DNA of 6,846 nt from Zygophlyctis sp. KS116 (lineage: Eukaryota > Fungi > Chytridiomycota): the NCBI GenBank assembly GCA_054661495.1, contig BAAFSQ010000426.1:1-6846 (forward strand). The letters are read 5' to 3'. This document shows positions 1-6,846 of this stretch, one piece after another (the first letter of the stretch is position 1; each line of letters begins with the position of its first letter). Below the pieces are notes generated by a model. The model did not search any database and had not been told where the DNA came from. It worked only from the letters and a program-made list of their open reading frames with translations. Position numbers and translations under genes: made by a program.

Positions 1-217
1 CCATCCTTGCAAATCATTGAATTATTCATTTCTATTCCTGGACAATGGTCTATCAATGGAAACTCTCCTATTTCTTTATAGTTAATTATGACAGTGTACC
101 TAGTGTACCATCGGACGAGTTTTCGGACAAACACATATGTAATGAGAATAATACAAGACCTGTAATTATAAACATTAATAAAAAGAATCTGGAAGCTTTA
201 GTTTTCCGTATCATCAT
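1..217 (-). CDS. 5' part of an unknown signal-anchor/secreted protein (runs off the window); exons 217-100 and 73-<1
   Basis: Not in the ORF track. ATG at 217 gives MMIRKTKASRFFLLMFIITGLVLFSLHMCLSENSSDGTL (basic N-terminus plus hydrophobic helix). Removing a 26-nt intron (99-74) continues the frame stop-free as EIGEFPLIDHCPGIEMNNSMICKD to the edge. No homology recognised. Confidence 0.65.
74..99 (-). other. Spliceosomal intron, 26 nt
   Basis: GTACACTGTCATAATTAACTATAAAG; TTAAC branch-like motif, AAG acceptor, modal length for the window. An alternative in-frame donor lies 9 nt upstream. Confidence 0.6.
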
Positions 218-223
218 GAGAGA

Positions 224-248
224 TATTTGAAAGAGCTATTTGAAAGAG
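224..248. repeat. Direct repeat TATTTGAAAGAG x2
   Basis: Identical 12-mers at 224-235 and 237-248. Confidence 0.85.
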
Positions 249-1472: not shown

Positions 1473-2156
1473 CTACAATAAAACACAATTTTTAGTTTTC
1501 TTGACTTTGGTGTGAGGAGCCAAAACTGCCCGAATTGCTTCATCAAATACATTTTTCAATCCTTTTTGAGTCAATGCAGAGCATTCTAGATATTTTATAG
1601 CATTAATTTCTTTAGCCATTTGAGATCCCTGAGGATAAGAAATTGGAGCCATTCTCTTGTCACGTAATTTCTCAATAGTCTCTCGATCCTCACGTAAATC
1701 CAATTTAGTACCAACAAGAACTAGAGGTGTGTTGGGTGCATGATGACTAATTTCTGGATACCACTTATACTTTAAGCAACAGAAATTACCTTTGTTCTAA
1801 CATTTTCAAATGAAGGTGGAGAGACCAGAGAAAAACAAATCAAGAAAACATCAGTTTGAGGATAAGAAAGTGGTCGAAGTCTGTCATAATCTTCTTGTCC
1901 TGCAGTATCCCAAAGACCTAAATTTATAGGTTTTCCATCCACCATGATATTTGCTGAATAATTGTCAAAACTGGAATTATTTTAGAGAAATTACACTGTA
2001 GGAATATATTCTCCTGGAAAAGCATTTGTTGTGTATGAAATTAGTACTTTTATACTTAGCGCTAAAATTACTTACGACATGTTTTTCCAACAGCTCTAAC
2101 TATTAAGAAAATAGTAATTACCCGTCACCAACAACGACACACTTGATGGACTGCAT
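1473..2156 (-). CDS. RAC1: Rac-family Rho GTPase, 192 aa; exons 2156-2122, 2095-2076, 2046-1995, 1970-1790, 1763-1473
   Basis: Spliced 579 nt: [43 protein letters not shown]...[24 protein letters not shown]...[11 protein letters not shown]. Has P-loop, Rac switch I, polybasic tail and CAAX box. Confidence 0.98.
1764..1789 (-). other. Rac1 intron 4, 26 nt
   Basis: GTAATTTCTGTTGCTTAAAGTATAAG; restores VRTK-WYPE. Confidence 0.95.
1971..1994 (-). other. Rac1 intron 3, 24 nt
   Basis: GTAATTTCTCTAAAATAATTCCAG; restores PTV-FDNY. Confidence 0.95.
2047..2075 (-). other. Rac1 intron 2, 29 nt
   Basis: GTAAGTAATTTTAGCGCTAAGTATAAAAG; restores KTC-LLIS. Confidence 0.95.
2096..2121 (-). other. Rac1 intron 1, 26 nt
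   Basis: GTAATTACTATTTTCTTAATAGTTAG; restores GDG-AVGK. Confidence 0.95.
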
Positions 2157-2197
2157 TCTCAGCTAAAACCTTTTTCTTAAAAAACTTCTACGCGAAA

Positions 2198-2278
2198 ATT
2201 CTCTTAAAAACGCGCAAATTCAAGCAGAATGACAATGAATTCTATACTGAAATATGCTTCAACTAGTCCAAATCTTTT
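2198..2278 (-). pseudogene. Decayed duplicate fragment of the UTP21 3' end
   Basis: 2198-2223 is identical (26/26) to 3742-3767, including EFARF* and the stop. 2232-2240 equals 3774-3782. 2249-2278 matches 3910-3940 with 2 mismatches and 1 gap. The blocks are colinear and in the same orientation. Confidence 0.9.
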
Positions 2279-2329
2279 ACTATTTAGCTGTAAAATAAAT
2301 TTTGAATAATTTTGATGTATTTTTCATTT

Positions 2330-2381
2330 GAGATTTGTAGAGACTTTTGGAGATTTTTTAGAAATTTTTTAGAAATTTTCA
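2330..2381. repeat. Degenerate 10-11 nt tandem repeat (GARATTTTTWA-like) x5
   Basis: gagatttgta gagacttttg gagatttttta gaaatttttta gaaattttca. Confidence 0.7.
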
Positions 2382-2396
2382 ACTTGAACAAAAGTT

Positions 2397-3557
2397 ATGG
2401 TGTCATACATGAAAAGAAGGTTTGTAGTTCTATTTTTGGCCTTTTGTATATTTTACTTGTCTCTTGCCAATTTCAAAATCTCTAAAAATTCAAAGATTGT
2501 ATTTACTACTTCTTCAGAATGCACAATTACTCTTTCGGACAAGGCGTTCAGTATTCCCTTGCAAGTTGAAAACAATTATTACTTTTCTAAACAATTTCGA
2601 CAGTATTTAAAGCAAAATCCTGATGGTTTAAAGGCTGTGGAATTAAGTACATTGATGTCCGAATATGTTGACATTGATAATTCAATCAGTTATTCAAAGA
2701 AAATAACTAGAAATCTTCGTATAACTTATCTTAATGCTGAAAGAGGAAAGTTTTGGTGTGAATTGGCACATTTGATTAAACAAGATTTGATTTTGGGAAA
2801 CACAGATGTCTGGATCATGAATGAATTTGATTTGGGAATGTCCAGATCAGATAATTCGTATACTATAAGGCTTTTAGCATATGCTTTGGGTCTAAATTAT
2901 GCTTTTGGAATTTAATTTCTAGAATTAAGTCATGGCAATTGGGATGAAATTAAAAGTGTACAAAATAATCATGGGAAAGATGAGTGGGGATTGCATGGTA
3001 ATGCAGTCTTGTCTATTTATCCTATAAAATCAGCTAAAATTATCAGATCTAGTGGAATTGAATATTTGTATAATCAGTCTTCTTTTTTTAATGCTTATGG
3101 TTCGGAAATGCGACTTGGAGGTAGAATGACTCTGTTTGCTCACATTGAAACTCCCAATGGTGACTTATTTTCAGTCGCGGCTTCTCACCAACAAGCTGGA
3201 ATGGAAGATTTAAAGTATGATCATCATAAGCATTATGTCATCTCTCTACTAAAAATGTATATTTTGCAATTAAATATGCCTGTTCTTTTTGGAGGTGATA
3301 TTTGGGGTGATCTTTGTAAAAATCTTGATTTAATGGAATTTATTTCAGTTAAGACTCCAATGGTTCATAAAATGTCTGATGGATCAATTAAATTTGGAGG
3401 AGGTGGTGGTGATTATATTTGTTCTTCTAAAGATGGAATTGAAAATGTCTCTCCTCCGACTATTGCTCCTGGAATCGGACATTCTAAAAATAGAAATGGA
3501 ACAGAAGTTTATATGGATCATCAAATGGTTTCATTTTCTTTCGATCTAAAAGCATAA
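2397..3557 (+). pseudogene. Endonuclease/exonuclease/phosphatase (EEP) family gene with N-terminal signal peptide/anchor, interrupted by one in-frame TAA (2913-2915); 386 aa if read through
   Basis: ORFs 2397-2915 and 2991-3557 share a frame, and the linker reads FLELSHGNWDEIKSVQNNHGKDEWGLHGN. EEP motifs: YLNAERG, DVWIMNEFDLGMSRS, LGLNYAFGI*FLEL, HGNAVLS.YPI, RLGGRM, FGGD, DYI, terminal DH. No introns found. Pseudogene status is uncertain. Confidence 0.8.
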
Positions 3558-3747
3558 AGGACTTTTAAGACTTTACACGCATGACAATAATTAAGTTGTT
3601 TAACTAATAAGATTTCAAGTCAGTTATGCACATGAATCGATTATAAAGCTAGATTCTTTATTATAAAGCGATCCATTGATAATGAAGTAAAGATTTATAA
3701 AATTTGATACTCTACCGTAAGAAACCGAATTTCTTCCCAGTATTCTC

Positions 3748-6563
3748 TTAAAAACGCGCAAATTCAATCAAACACAATGAATGCGCAAAACTCTGGTCCA
3801 ACCCCGCCCATCCTTGTTTTGTGAGGTTAAAAAAATCTCTAAGGGCAATCCGGAGGTTAGTGTTGTCAGATTGAATCAGATCTTGGCCATACAATTTCAA
3901 AAAGACGCAGAAATATGCTTGAACTAGTTCAAAATCTTTTCTAGATTTCAACTTTTCCAACATCTTCCTAGTAAATAGCTCCAGCTCTCTTGATTCATTC
4001 TCTACAGAGAGTGATCGAATATAAAGATCTAGAGATGATGGAGATAAGGTTTTTAAATAATCAAAAAATTCCATATCTACAATTTAAATTTCTTGTAAAA
4101 CTTACAGTTTTGAGATTCCAGTAATTGAGAAAATTTTGATTCGGGAAGAACTCTAGACAAATTTAGAATTTTAGATTCATTAGGCTCAATAGACTCCTTT
4201 TTCACAAATTTTCTTTCGACTCCAGGAAGAGATTCAAGGAAAAAAGGTGCCTTTTCTGGAGTTTTGGGTGGTTCAACGGGCATATTTCTTTTCTAACCAT
4301 GATTCTTATAAGTATTTTACCTTTATGGCATCCAGAGACAATAGATTCTGCCATTTAACTTTTGACAAGGTAGATAAGGTGATCATGTCATCATTAATTT
4401 CAGAAAGAGAGATTTTGGAAACATCAAAGGCATCATCAACAGTACATTCTTAACAGTTAAACTAAAATGATTACCGTTCTCTAAATCTTGATCTTGATTA
4501 CCACTAGGTAATGGCATTTCAGAGGTTCGAACAGTATTAGACCCAATATTACGAATAGGAACATTTTCATAGAGCGATCGATTCGCCCAAACGAAAAGTC
4601 CTAGTTGGTCGACATGAGTAGTTACTAAGAATTCACTGGTTGGTGAAAATGAGACTGATGTTGGGATATGAGGTACTTGAAATATATCAATTAAATAACT
4701 TGATGGAAGATCCCAGGTTCTGATAGTAGAATCTAAACTACAAGAAATAAGCCATCGCCCGTCTTTGCTAAAAGTAACATCAGTTATACGAGATTCATGC
4801 CCCCAAAATTCACGAATTATTTTTCGAGATTCAAGATCGAATATACGAATACATAGATCATCAGTGATAACAGCCAAAAGGCTGGTGTCTCTATGAATCT
4901 TTACAAAATTGATACAAGATTCAAAAGGAATTTGATGTAAAAGTTTTCCTGAACCAAAATCAAATATGCATAGAGTTTTATCTAAAGAGCCACTAATCAG
5001 CAAGCTATTTGTACTGTCTGTAACAATTGACACTACAGCTTTCGAATGACCTTCAATTTATATTTAAAATAAAAACCTTTAAATGCTCCTCTAAATTGCC
5101 CAGATTGCAAATTATATTTTTCAATATTCCCCTTTAAAGATCCAATGAATGCAAAATTTCCACAGGCACTTATAGCTACAGACTTTTGCTTTTAGAATAT
5201 TTATAATTTACCTTAACTGTAGATCCATCGTTTGGTGTAAATTTGTGTGTCCCTAAAGCCTTCTTTTGAGAATTCCAAGTATGTGCTACATTATTCTCTT
5301 GATGAAAACTCAAAATATTATCCCATTCTTTAGCACGAGTTTCACAAGCATCAAAATCCAGAATAGTGGGAAATCGCAAATTTTCAATAGATATTTGCAG
5401 CTTTTTGCTCTTCTTTGAGAGTGAGCCCTGAGAAAGTTCTGTATTCTGAGCATCTCTAATCATTGAAAAAGACCGTAATGTCTGATCTCTTCCAGCAGAC
5501 AGTAAATTTTTCCCGTCACTGCTATAGTGCTTTACTCGATGTGGCGGTTTAAAATGACCAGCTCTGGATTTTAGCAATCTAGGAATTCCATCCAAGCTAT
5601 CAAAGATCCACATCTTTATAGAATTGTCTGTAGAAGCAGTAATTAATAGCGGTTGATTTGGATAAAAATAACAGGAATGAATTAAACCATCATGCGCCCC
5701 TCTTTCGATATGAAATAGACGTCTTGTTTCTAAATTCCATAAAGCGACATCCCCTTCCATATTCGCTGTGGCCATTATAGGTTGTCCATCTTGATATTAC
5801 TAAATTGTAACATACCAGTTCTAAAAGAGATAGCCGAGACTCTCCCTTCTTGCTTAAAGCTCATAATCTCTTCTGCGCTCTTTATATCATATATAATAAT
5901 TCTTCCATCCAATAATCCAATAGCAATCACATCAACTGTAGGAGCTTGAACTAGAACAGTAATTGAAGACCCAAAACTAGGAAATTCGTAAATTAAAGAC
6001 ATTGATCTAATATTCCAAAGCTGCAAAATCCCATTTTGGCTGCCTAGTATAATCTTATTCAAGTATGTTGCCGGATGAAGAAATGCTGACGGATAAAAGT
6101 CATCATTAAATCCCAAAACATTGAGAACCTCAAAGGTAGAATGATCCCACATCCTAATGCAGTCAGAATACAATGCCAGTAAGATATTTCCAAAGACCAT
6201 CAATTGATGTATTGGTCCTCTTGCATCCTCGGAACAAAGCTTTCCAATCTAAAGATCAGACTTAAGTAAACTTACCTCCTTTGCTCTTTCGTAGATCAAA
6301 ACATGAGATCCTGAAGCCACAAATGTAAAATCCTTAAATGCAGCCATTGCTGAAATTGAATCATCAGCCTGCGATCCAACAAAAAGTAAATTTAGTTTCT
6401 CTCCATCATAGATCTGAAATGTTTTACCGATACATGTTGTAATTGCAAACGTTTGACCCCTCTGCTGAATGCAGATTGGGACATCATTGGTAATGTATCC
6501 CAATGCTCTAAATGGTGTAAAAAGTCCTATCGGTTAGCATCAGAGTCATATATTACCCTTCAT
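3748..6563 (-). CDS. UTP21: U3 snoRNP/SSU processome WD40 protein Utp21/WDR36, 864 aa; exons 6563-6557, 6526-6276, 6248-5816, 5789-5212, 5182-5077, 5050-4475, 4448-4321, 4292-4106, 4076-3748
   Basis: The spliced 2595-nt frame is continuous. Motifs: LFTPFRALGYITNDVP, HPATYLNKI, SFRTDGQP, PRLLKSRAGH, ISACGNFAFIG, WQNLLSLDAIKKRNMPVEPPKTPEKAPFFL, KDFELVQAY. Confidence 0.96.
4077..4105 (-). other. UTP21 intron 8, 29 nt
   Basis: GTAAGTTTTACAAGAAATTTAAATTGTAG; restores the frame. Confidence 0.9.
4293..4320 (-). other. UTP21 intron 7, 28 nt
   Basis: GTAAAATACTTATAAGAATCATGGTTAG; gives DAIK-KRNMP. Confidence 0.9.
4449..4474 (-). other. UTP21 intron 6, 26 nt
   Basis: GTAATCATTTTAGTTTAACTGTTAAG; restores the frame into ITLSTL...WQNLL. 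Confidence 0.85.
5051..5076 (-). other. UTP21 intron 5, 26 nt
   Basis: GTTTTTATTTTAAATATAAATTGAAG; gives FK-GHSKAV. Confidence 0.88.
5183..5211 (-). other. UTP21 intron 4, 29 nt
   Basis: GTAAATTATAAATATTCTAAAAGCAAAAG; gives TVK-SVAISACGN. Confidence 0.88.
5790..5815 (-). other. UTP21 intron 3, 26 nt
   Basis: GTATGTTACAATTTAGTAATATCAAG; gives FRT-DGQP. Confidence 0.93.
6249..6275 (-). other. UTP21 intron 2, 27 nt
   Basis: GTAAGTTTACTTAAGTCTGATCTTTAG; removes an in-frame stop. Confidence 0.92.
6527..6556 (-). other. UTP21 intron 1, 30 nt
   Basis: GTAATATATGACTCTGATGCTAACCGATAG; canonical GCTAAC branch; joins MKG-LFTPFR. Confidence 0.88.
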
Positions 6564-6581: not shown

Positions 6582-6846
6582 TTATTCGATAAAATTTTCA
6601 ATCGCTGGAAAATTGTTTCTGTACTCATCAATCCATGCCTTTAGTTTCCTTTCCTTTGATGCGTCAACCTTTCTTACAAAGAAATACCATCCAGACTCAT
6701 TAAATATTGAATGATCGCCGTCATGTAATGTTTGAGGATGTGATTCGCCAGGAAGAAAATTGATAAAATGTGATATGATCATGTCCGAAATATGCAATTC
6801 GGGTGAATAGCCTAGCATTGAAAAAAAAGATTCATCGGGCAACAGA
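6582..6846 (-). CDS. C-terminus of a probable GT14 (Core-2/I-branching, xylosyltransferase-like) glycosyltransferase; 5' part lies outside the window
   Basis: LLPDESFF resembles the GT14 P-x-E-S-F-F motif and YFFVRKVD resembles the FFARKF motif, in the expected order. Only about 87 aa are visible. Confidence 0.65.
   Translation of the reverse strand, partial: LLPDESFFSMLGYSPELHISDMIISHFINFLPGESHPQTLHDGDHSIFNESGWYFFVRKVDASKERKLKAWIDEYRNNFPAIENFIE

Follow-up and report, generated by a model that had tools for sequence, protein, structure and literature searches.

Rearrangement breakpoints in Drosophila offer a close parallel to the locus reported here. At these breakpoints, duplications ranging from 46 bp to 1.9 kb, with a median of 321 bp, are attributed to staggered breaks (isochromatid/chromatid model), and breakpoints may be re-used (Ranz et al. 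2007, PMC1885836). The stretch of DNA analysed in this study, referred to as the window, comprises 6,846 nucleotides (nt) and corresponds to the whole of contig BAAFSQ010000426.1 (C426) of Zygophlyctis sp. KS116. It belongs to a 12.7-Mb eukaryotic assembly of 1175 contigs (GCA_054661495.1, hereafter G000), which is fragmented and of metagenome type. Within the window, an intronless gene whose predicted product is an EEP-fold phosphodiesterase lies between UTP21 and a gene for a Rac1-type small GTPase, and a decayed second copy of the UTP21 3′ end separates it from Rac1. We consider it likely that this arrangement is the fixed scar of an intragenomic relocation, in which a host gene entered a staggered break whose overhangs were filled in. 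The features that make up the scar are the following.

1473 to 2156, minus strand: Rac1-type small GTPase (PF00071; ATG at 2156-2154), ending in a CVLL box and TAG, with several introns of 22-40 nt.

2157 to 2203, minus strand: spacer of 47 nt from the relic stop to the Rac1 ATG, the presumed Rac1 promoter or 5′ leader, with a CGCG box at 2191-2194.

2198 to 2278, minus strand: relic copy of the UTP21 3′ end, now noncoding and upstream of Rac1, with the relic TAA at 2204-2206.

2279 to 3741, plus strand: inserted segment of 1463 nt, in which the EEP-like gene has flanks of 118 nt (5′) and 184 nt (3′).

2397 to 3557, plus strand: EEP-like gene, intronless, 386 residues, a predicted type-II membrane-anchored EEP-fold phosphodiesterase.

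3742 to 3955, minus strand: parent and functional copy of the duplicated segment, containing the last ~200 nt of the UTP21 coding sequence (PF04192), its stop at 3748-3750 and 6 nt past the stop.

3748 to 6559, minus strand: UTP21/WDR36 gene, encoding two beta-propellers and the Utp21 C-terminal domain, with short introns.

The relic aligns with the end of UTP21 in a series of colinear pieces. Positions 2198-2226 match 3742-3770 at 28/29 nt and include an exact run of 26 nt (2198-2223) that takes in the stop triplet, located at 2204-2206 in the relic and at 3748-3750 in the gene. Further along, 2231-2240 matches 3773-3782 (9/10), 2249-2266 matches 3910-3927 (17/18) and, after a 1-nt gap, 2267-2278 matches 3929-3940 (11/12); taken together, the last two pieces (relic 2249-2278) are identical at 28 of 30 positions. 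The relic is therefore laid out as block C′ (2249-2278), a filler of 8 nt (2241-2248) and blocks B′A′ (2198-2240), with the filler replacing 127 nt of UTP21 (3783-3909). A repeat finder independently returned the same block pairs (families D4 and D6). In total, the homology comprises ~70 nt over three blocks and reaches coding sequence located 160-190 nt upstream of the UTP21 stop; a possible extension of ~10 nt (to ~2290 / 3952) is too weak to call.

The 25-mer core of the relic occurs exactly twice in the 12.7-Mb assembly, both times within the window, and its reversed-pattern control gave zero matches; the similarity to UTP21 is thus neither a product of chance nor a dispersed repeat. A dispersed repeat was also rejected as a candidate through a DNA search with the 121-nt relic region, which returned only itself. 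The first-pass annotation, made from the sequence alone, had described the matching blocks, the shared stop and the substitution of 127 nt by 8 nt, and had asked whether the motif might be scattered throughout the genome. Alignment and repeat finder bear out every one of its numbers, the distance from the relic stop to the Rac1 ATG on the minus strand is 47 nt, as had been stated, and the count of two occurrences settles the matter of dispersal. The duplication is confirmed.

Contigs of related organisms, retrieved through their best matches to a UTP21 exon, made it possible to observe the site both with and without the inserted segment. In three related lineages that lack the insert (L006, L007 and L008), and whose UTP21 exons are ~77-83% identical to those of the window, UTP21 ends in ...EFARF* and is followed by 23, 29 and 21 nt, respectively, and then by the Rac1 ATG, with no gene between. 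The segment is present in L005, a scaffold from a different metagenome that is 95.3% identical to the window over its full length. In this scaffold, the gene and its orientation, the relic and its internal gap, and the 47-nt spacer all match those of the window. Being common to the window and L005, the insertion must predate the split of the two strains. Contigs of an independent sequencing run (X3) bridge both junctions (2100-2358 and 3302-3798), and, since the L005 scaffold and these contigs reproduce both of them, misassembly is excluded. In deeper outgroups (L022 and L023, with UTP21 ~48% identical) no Rac gene was found adjoining UTP21, and the adjacency of the two genes is therefore specific to the close clade. 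The earlier proposal that UTP21 and Rac1 were ancestrally adjacent head to tail is matched by their direct adjacency in L006, L007 and L008, and the sole relative with the EEP-like gene at this position, L005, also bears the relic. Another contig (L004), which holds a more distant homologue of the inserted gene's product (P0001), was discarded as a source of synteny; it derives from a different, less compact organism, and two of its neighbour proteins are unmatched in G000.

The similarity of the relic to different UTP21 genes also informs on the direction of the change. The relic is identical to the UTP21 end of its own lineage at 67 of 71 aligned nt, compared with 59/67 for L007, 49/61 for L006 and 49/59 for L008, and the bases just past the stop (GAGAAT) are common only to the relic and the UTP21 end of its own lineage. 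These lineage-specific states of the relic place the duplication in the window lineage, later than its split from L006-L008. In the UTP21 tree, the window and L005 are sister to a group formed by L007 and the pair L006 and L008; parsimony on this tree cannot orient the change, and polarity accordingly rests on the lineage-specific similarity of the relic. Regarding timing, the relic and its parent copy differ by ~5.6%, whereas the synonymous divergence (dS) between the two strains is ~0.08-0.09, which dates the event to not long before the strain split. These data agree with the earlier idea that the EEP-like gene arrived together with a duplication of about 200 bp or more: the duplicated stretch spans ~210 nt, the relic is lineage-specific and the site is empty in relatives.

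The probable origin of the inserted gene was sought among its relatives and in the remainder of the assembly. Searches with each half of the protein found no second copy or paralogue in G000. Three proteins from sister lineages (P0017, P0164 and P0165) are 61-67% identical to the product of the inserted gene, and all of them are encoded by single open reading frames (ORFs). The intronless condition is consequently the ancestral state of this gene and, being found in the sister lineages too, is uninformative on how the gene moved. P0017 (in L013) and P0164 (in L017) are encoded directly downstream of a DUF5672 gene; P0164 comes from the same sample as the insert-free L006, and P0165 (in L018) from the same sample as the insert-free L007. 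The window itself contains part of a DUF5672 gene.

1 to 242, minus strand: 5′ end of a DUF5672 gene (ATG at ~218-216); in sister lineages, DUF5672 directly precedes the EEP-like gene.

Colinearity between contig C201 of G000 and the L017 region extends through 13 called genes and reaches the 5′ end of DUF5672; judged by gene order, the ancestral donor locus is still recognisable in this assembly, minus the gene. In the EEP tree, P0017 and P0164 form a close pair and P0165 branches further out, a pattern that mirrors the L006/L008 pair plus L007 of the UTP21 tree only if the same-sample pairing holds. The pairing of P0017 with L008 is a guess, and the two trees place the window lineage differently, so that their agreement is only partial.

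In G000, DUF5672 appears in two contexts: beside RPS9, in the window as in L005, and at the end of C201 (L026, 9759-10000). The 5′ ends of the window and C201 copies are 94% identical, and their homology fades ~25 nt upstream of the ATG. L005 holds a complete DUF5672 gene beside RPS9, and contig C850 (L014) contains a DUF5672 3′ end that diverges from L005 13 nt after the stop. These two contexts may reflect either the duplication of a gene-sized unit or structural variation between strains. From left to right, the window contains the DUF5672 5′ end (minus), RPS9 (plus), SF3b10 (plus), Rac1 (minus), the EEP-like gene (plus) and UTP21 (minus). The formerly adjacent DUF5672 and EEP-like gene thus now flank the Rac1-SF3b10-RPS9 block, and this placement of former neighbours on either side of the same block speaks for a history that was local or involved several steps, and against one long-range jump. 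A scar of the gene was sought beside DUF5672, at L005 12700-13200 and in contig C850, where only short matches at chance level appeared; likewise, no long flanking duplication was found around the L005 DUF5672 unit. In a separate observation, an ORF and a polyprenyl synthase gene follow the EEP-like gene in L018, whereas in contig C153 of G000 (L021) it is a Utp12-family WD-repeat gene that precedes this pair; gene order near the donor region is rearranged between lineages.

The course of events that we favour can be set out as follows. In the ancestor, UTP21 and Rac1 would have stood head to tail, ~20-30 nt apart, with the Rac1 promoter overlapping the last UTP21 codons, while the EEP-like gene would have resided elsewhere, immediately downstream of DUF5672. 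In the lineage of the window and L005, a 1.46-kb fragment consisting of the gene with 118 nt upstream and 184 nt downstream would have entered the UTP21 3′ end in inverted orientation. The entry point would have been a break with strand cuts ~210 nt apart, one ~200 nt ahead of the UTP21 stop and the other 6 nt beyond it. Fill-in of the overhangs followed by end joining would have copied this stretch to both sides of the insert, generating a direct duplication. Subsequently, the UTP21-side copy would have stayed under protein-coding constraint, and the Rac1-side copy would have lost at least 127 nt from its middle and drifted, retaining the stop-proximal CGCG core, which probably serves the Rac1 promoter. 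At present, the relocated gene evolves under relaxed constraint, with a null allele segregating in the sampled population. The length of the duplication may itself be what survives selection, because only the copying of a stretch where gene end and promoter overlap would spare both essential neighbours.

The insert shows no hallmark of a mobile element among those looked for. Terminal inverted repeats were not detected (alignment score of 12 vs a shuffle mean of 10.9, standard deviation 1.8), and no further copies of the insert flanks or termini, nor any repeated tip, were found in G000. No transposase or mobility gene is present in the insert, whose single ORF encodes the EEP-fold enzyme, and neither a poly(A) tract at the junctions nor an A-run at 3700-3741 was observed. 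The absence of terminal inverted repeats and of a transposase, together with the unique insert ends, fits the suggestion made in the first-pass annotation that break repair, rather than a transposon, produced the structure.

The sequences upstream of Rac1 are relevant to the proposed overlap between promoter and coding end. Each of the five lineages has GAATTTGCGCGTTTTT and, after it, a second (T)CGCGT(T) ahead of the Rac1 ATG, and two CGCG boxes (TTTGCGCGTTTTT and TCGCGT) are found upstream of this ATG in the window (2191-2215) and in L005-L008. The CGCGC at 2211-2215 falls within the last codons of the relic; in the insert-free lineages, the first box doubles as the last five UTP21 codons (EFARF*). 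The 25-nt core is identical in the relics of both strains even though it is noncoding, and elsewhere in the relic the strains have diverged at a roughly neutral rate. The retained core is suggestive of a putative Rac1 promoter element, although statistically the signal is weak. Similar CGCG-rich stretches were also noted upstream of DUF5672 in L013 and of an epimerase gene in L005.

Several considerations weigh against relocation through a single staggered break. The mechanism is deduced from the end product alone, and, for a core as short as 25 nt, full identity in both relics carries only weak significance. All three insert-free relatives form a sister clade, so that parsimony by itself would set no direction. 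The donor and recipient contigs of the sister lineages appear to belong together only through a shared sample and through similar divergence and GC content. Finally, a single insertion leaves unexplained why the DUF5672 5′ end is located 2.7 kb away, beyond the Rac1-SF3b10-RPS9 block, which points to a more complex or multi-step history.

This last difficulty is where an explanation based on two nested staggered-break inversions has its strength, although overall it appears unlikely. The DUF5672-EEP pair would first have been located just beyond RPS9. One inversion, cut in the UTP21 3′ end with a stagger of ~210 nt, would have flipped the stretch from Rac1 to the EEP-like gene and left an inverted copy on Rac1; a second one would have re-used the distal breakpoint and flipped the stretch from DUF5672 to Rac1 back. 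The duplication would thereby become direct, and the EEP-like gene alone would remain inverted between UTP21 and Rac1. This scheme yields the exact present order and orientations (UTP21+, EEP-, Rac1+, SF3b10-, RPS9-, DUF5672+) and explains why DUF5672 and the EEP-like gene, neighbours in the sister lineages, flank the same 2.7-kb block. Drosophila provides precedents for both of its ingredients, duplications at staggered breaks (median 321 bp) and breakpoints used more than once (PMC1885836), and the strains differ from 13 nt past the DUF5672 stop, as expected at a re-used breakpoint. However, it requires two events, a shared breakpoint and a prior move of the DUF5672-EEP pair to a position beside RPS9; moreover, no duplication was found at the other breakpoints and no intermediate arrangement was observed.

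Replication template switching, of the type known as fork stalling and template switching or microhomology-mediated break-induced replication (FoSTeS/MMBIR), and repair templated by RNA or cDNA are more improbable still. A broken fork or end in the UTP21 3′ region would have copied the EEP-like gene from the donor and re-primed ~210 nt back; in the RNA variant, the new UTP21 3′ end would have been copied from spliced UTP21 RNA. The distribution of introns gives this idea some appeal. L006, L007 and L008 have a final UTP21 intron (after ...FLK, ~145 nt from the stop; window ~3874-3880) that the window and L005 lack, and the site of this intron falls within the duplicated segment. Also consistent with template switching are the end of the duplication just 6 nt past the stop, the patchy relic with two short retained blocks, and the recurrence of tight gene-sized units, such as the DUF5672 unit, whose limits lie ~25 nt ahead of the ATG and 13 nt beyond the stop. 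On the other hand, neither junction retains a poly(A) remnant, and the presence of introns varies at other UTP21 positions, so that the loss is possibly unrelated. The relic is silent on any link between intron loss and insertion because it has lost exactly the stretch that would reveal the intron. Beyond this question, intron presence in UTP21 was seen to vary at four positions (window ~6277, 4485, 4094 and 3874) among the window and L005-L008, and such variation, despite UTP21 exons that are only ~20% divergent in protein, denotes a fast turnover of introns in the clade.

Two further explanations are so improbable that they can be dismissed. An assembly artefact or a shared regulatory motif, which the fragmented assembly and the likeness of the core's CGCG motif to a promoter element might have suggested, conflicts with the recurrence of both junctions in the L005 scaffold and the X3 contigs and with three colinear blocks of ~70 nt that include coding sequence and whose core is unique to two sites. 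Horizontal transfer or retroposition of a foreign bacterial-type gene would account for an intronless gene without Pfam match, flanked by direct repeats, in an intron-dense genome, but relatives that are 61-67% identical occupy a conserved locus in sister lineages and are intronless there too; furthermore, the EEP tree is not strongly in conflict with the UTP21 tree and gives no sign of foreign origin, the family occurs in eukaryotic plankton, a poly(A) tail is lacking, and no parent gene with introns was found in G000. For this event, the earlier view of the gene as foreign is thereby abandoned in favour of relocation within the genome, given these donor-locus relatives beside DUF5672.

The relocated gene encodes a protein that escapes routine domain annotation. 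Neither Pfam nor NCBIfam returned a match for either half of the window protein, which was searched as two pieces, or for the intact L005 protein. An exhaustive homologue search collected 757 cluster representatives, and several homologues match PF03372 below threshold, at 19-20 bits against a gathering cut-off of 24.5. A profile built from 58 members and compared with solved structures matches TDP2 (E = 3e-8) and sphingomyelinase C / beta-hemolysin. The AlphaFold2 model (mean predicted local distance difference test score, pLDDT, of 93.2) combines a membrane helix at the N terminus with the four-layer alpha/beta sandwich of the EEP fold; every top match in Foldseek is an EEP protein, with a probability of 1.00 and target-normalised template-modelling scores (TM-scores) of up to 0.66. 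Across the 58 aligned sequences, N113, D145, R150 and E173 are invariant and N95, E143, H200, N202, H264 and D301 nearly so; a C-terminal SDH appears in the majority consensus only, outside the conserved columns. Based on the predicted structure and the profile, the product is a divergent EEP-fold phosphodiesterase, and the EEP label proposed earlier holds at the level of fold (Foldseek) and profile (TDP2).

In other members of the family, the EEP-like domain is frequently fused to Stealth_CR2 (a sugar-1-phosphate transferase), LicD, galactosyltransferase or FkbM methyltransferase (P0019, P0021, P0022, P0025 and P0042). Because of these frequent fusions to Stealth, LicD and galactosyltransferase domains, a sugar-phosphodiester substrate is inferred; the domain architecture suggests that the enzyme acts on glycan or sugar-phosphate linkages in the secretory pathway, and not on DNA or lipid. 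One member is annotated in a metagenome-assembled genome of Prymnesium (KAL3906079.1), and the wider family was found in eukaryotic plankton; the sequences suggest that the EEP-like clade may constitute an uncharacterised family of glycan-phosphodiester enzymes in these organisms. Upstream of the relocated gene, short tandem repeats similar to AGAAATTTTTT occupy 2340-2380, where conservation within the region is lowest (81% identity to L005). Their length varies by sample, with 9 nt more in run X3 and 9 nt fewer, plus small deletions, in run X6.

The window allele of this gene is interrupted.

2913 to 2915, plus strand: premature TAA, polymorphic (GAA in other alleles), at the codon of the invariant Glu, E173.

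All homologues carry Glu at this position. In run X2, the likely source sample, a contig with the TAA (depth 36.5) and a contig with GAA (depth 19) assemble side by side with three linked differences. Runs X3, X4 and X6 show only G at 2913, L005 reads GAA, and the TAA allele was seen in X2 only, beside the intact allele. Since both alleles assemble in X2 and the other samples have only G, the TAA is a real, segregating nonsense allele, predicted to be null. The first-pass annotation had described the EEP gene correctly as present and had overlooked this in-frame stop. An alternative genetic code was ruled out, since RPS9 (TAA), UTP21 (TAA), Rac1 (TAG) and SF3b10 (TGA) all end in normal stop codons at the positions predicted from their homologues. 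An intron over the TAA was likewise rejected: the only GT...AG pair that spans it would delete a conserved motif, and the homologues and the other allele have Glu/GAA. For the tree of EEP-like proteins, the stop was written as X. Between the window and L005, the ratio of nonsynonymous to synonymous divergence (dN/dS) is 0.41 for the EEP-like gene vs 0.16 for a UTP21 exon, and this difference indicates relaxed constraint on the relocated gene.

The setting of these events is a compact genome with the standard genetic code, introns of ~22-33 nt and intergenic spacers of only tens of bases, and DNA of the window lineage is present in freshwater metagenomes. The stop of the ORF upstream of UTP21 (6582-6584) is only 22 nt from the UTP21 ATG (6559-6557); for this reason, promoters that overlap the coding end of the preceding gene seem to be a rule in this genome. 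The spacer between the divergent RPS9 and DUF5672 genes (266-358) contains 4-5 copies of a 16-nt motif, TAGGTCTGACAATCAG, which is also found in strain L005 (11705-11800). These repeats may represent a repeated binding site.

The locus is of interest at several levels. The empty site, the filled site, the donor locus and a second strain are all recoverable from natural sequence, and because of this, both mechanism and timing can be argued from the data; the result is a clean, datable example of gene-order change in a compact genome. Where a promoter overlaps the last codons of the upstream gene, a new gene would be tolerated only if the overlap is duplicated, and long target duplications would therefore be the expected footprint of successful insertions. 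The relic additionally constitutes a natural experiment for locating the Rac1 promoter, since its core is free of coding constraint yet unchanged in both strains. Moreover, the segregating allele provides a natural null in an enzyme of an uncharacterised EEP clade that is often fused to Stealth domains.

A broader proposal, possible but on balance doubtful, is that this site is the host-gene instance of a genome-wide, gene-sparing insertion process that operates independently of transposon ends in this fungus-like lineage. If this were true, gene-sized units would enter very short spacers with target duplications of 0.2-1 kb, perhaps through a lineage-specific repair or replication pathway. 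Such a pathway might be templated by RNA or cDNA, in view of the intron missing within the duplicated stretch, and the process would be a main driver of the frequent micro-rearrangements between closely related strains.

Compared with known systems, the product of the inserted gene resembles the EEP superfamily (TDP2, neutral and bacterial sphingomyelinases, nocturnin; PF03372) in fold and in profile, and perhaps also at several conserved Asn, Glu, Asp and His positions. It differs from this superfamily in that it falls below the Pfam threshold and bears an N-terminal membrane anchor, and in many relatives the domain is fused to glycan enzymes. With a processed retrogene mobilised by long interspersed nuclear elements (LINEs), the locus shares an intronless gene at a new position between direct repeats; unlike such a retrogene, it has no poly(A), includes 118 nt of upstream flank, derives from a donor that was already intronless and has left no parent copy. 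As in a transposon target-site duplication, direct repeats of the target abut the insert. Nevertheless, they measure ~210 bp instead of 2-20 bp, terminal repeats, transposase and other copies of the ends are lacking, and what was inserted is one ordinary host gene together with its flanks. The locus is also like the staggered-break duplications of Drosophila (PMC1885836), which likewise involve non-repetitive host sequence including gene ends, are of comparable size, leave one copy to decay through substitutions and small deletions and involve no transposon. In Drosophila the copies are inverted and flank an inversion, whereas in the window they are direct and flank a 1.46-kb inserted gene. 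Direct copies imply either an insertion at a single staggered break, the reading favoured here, or two nested inversions.

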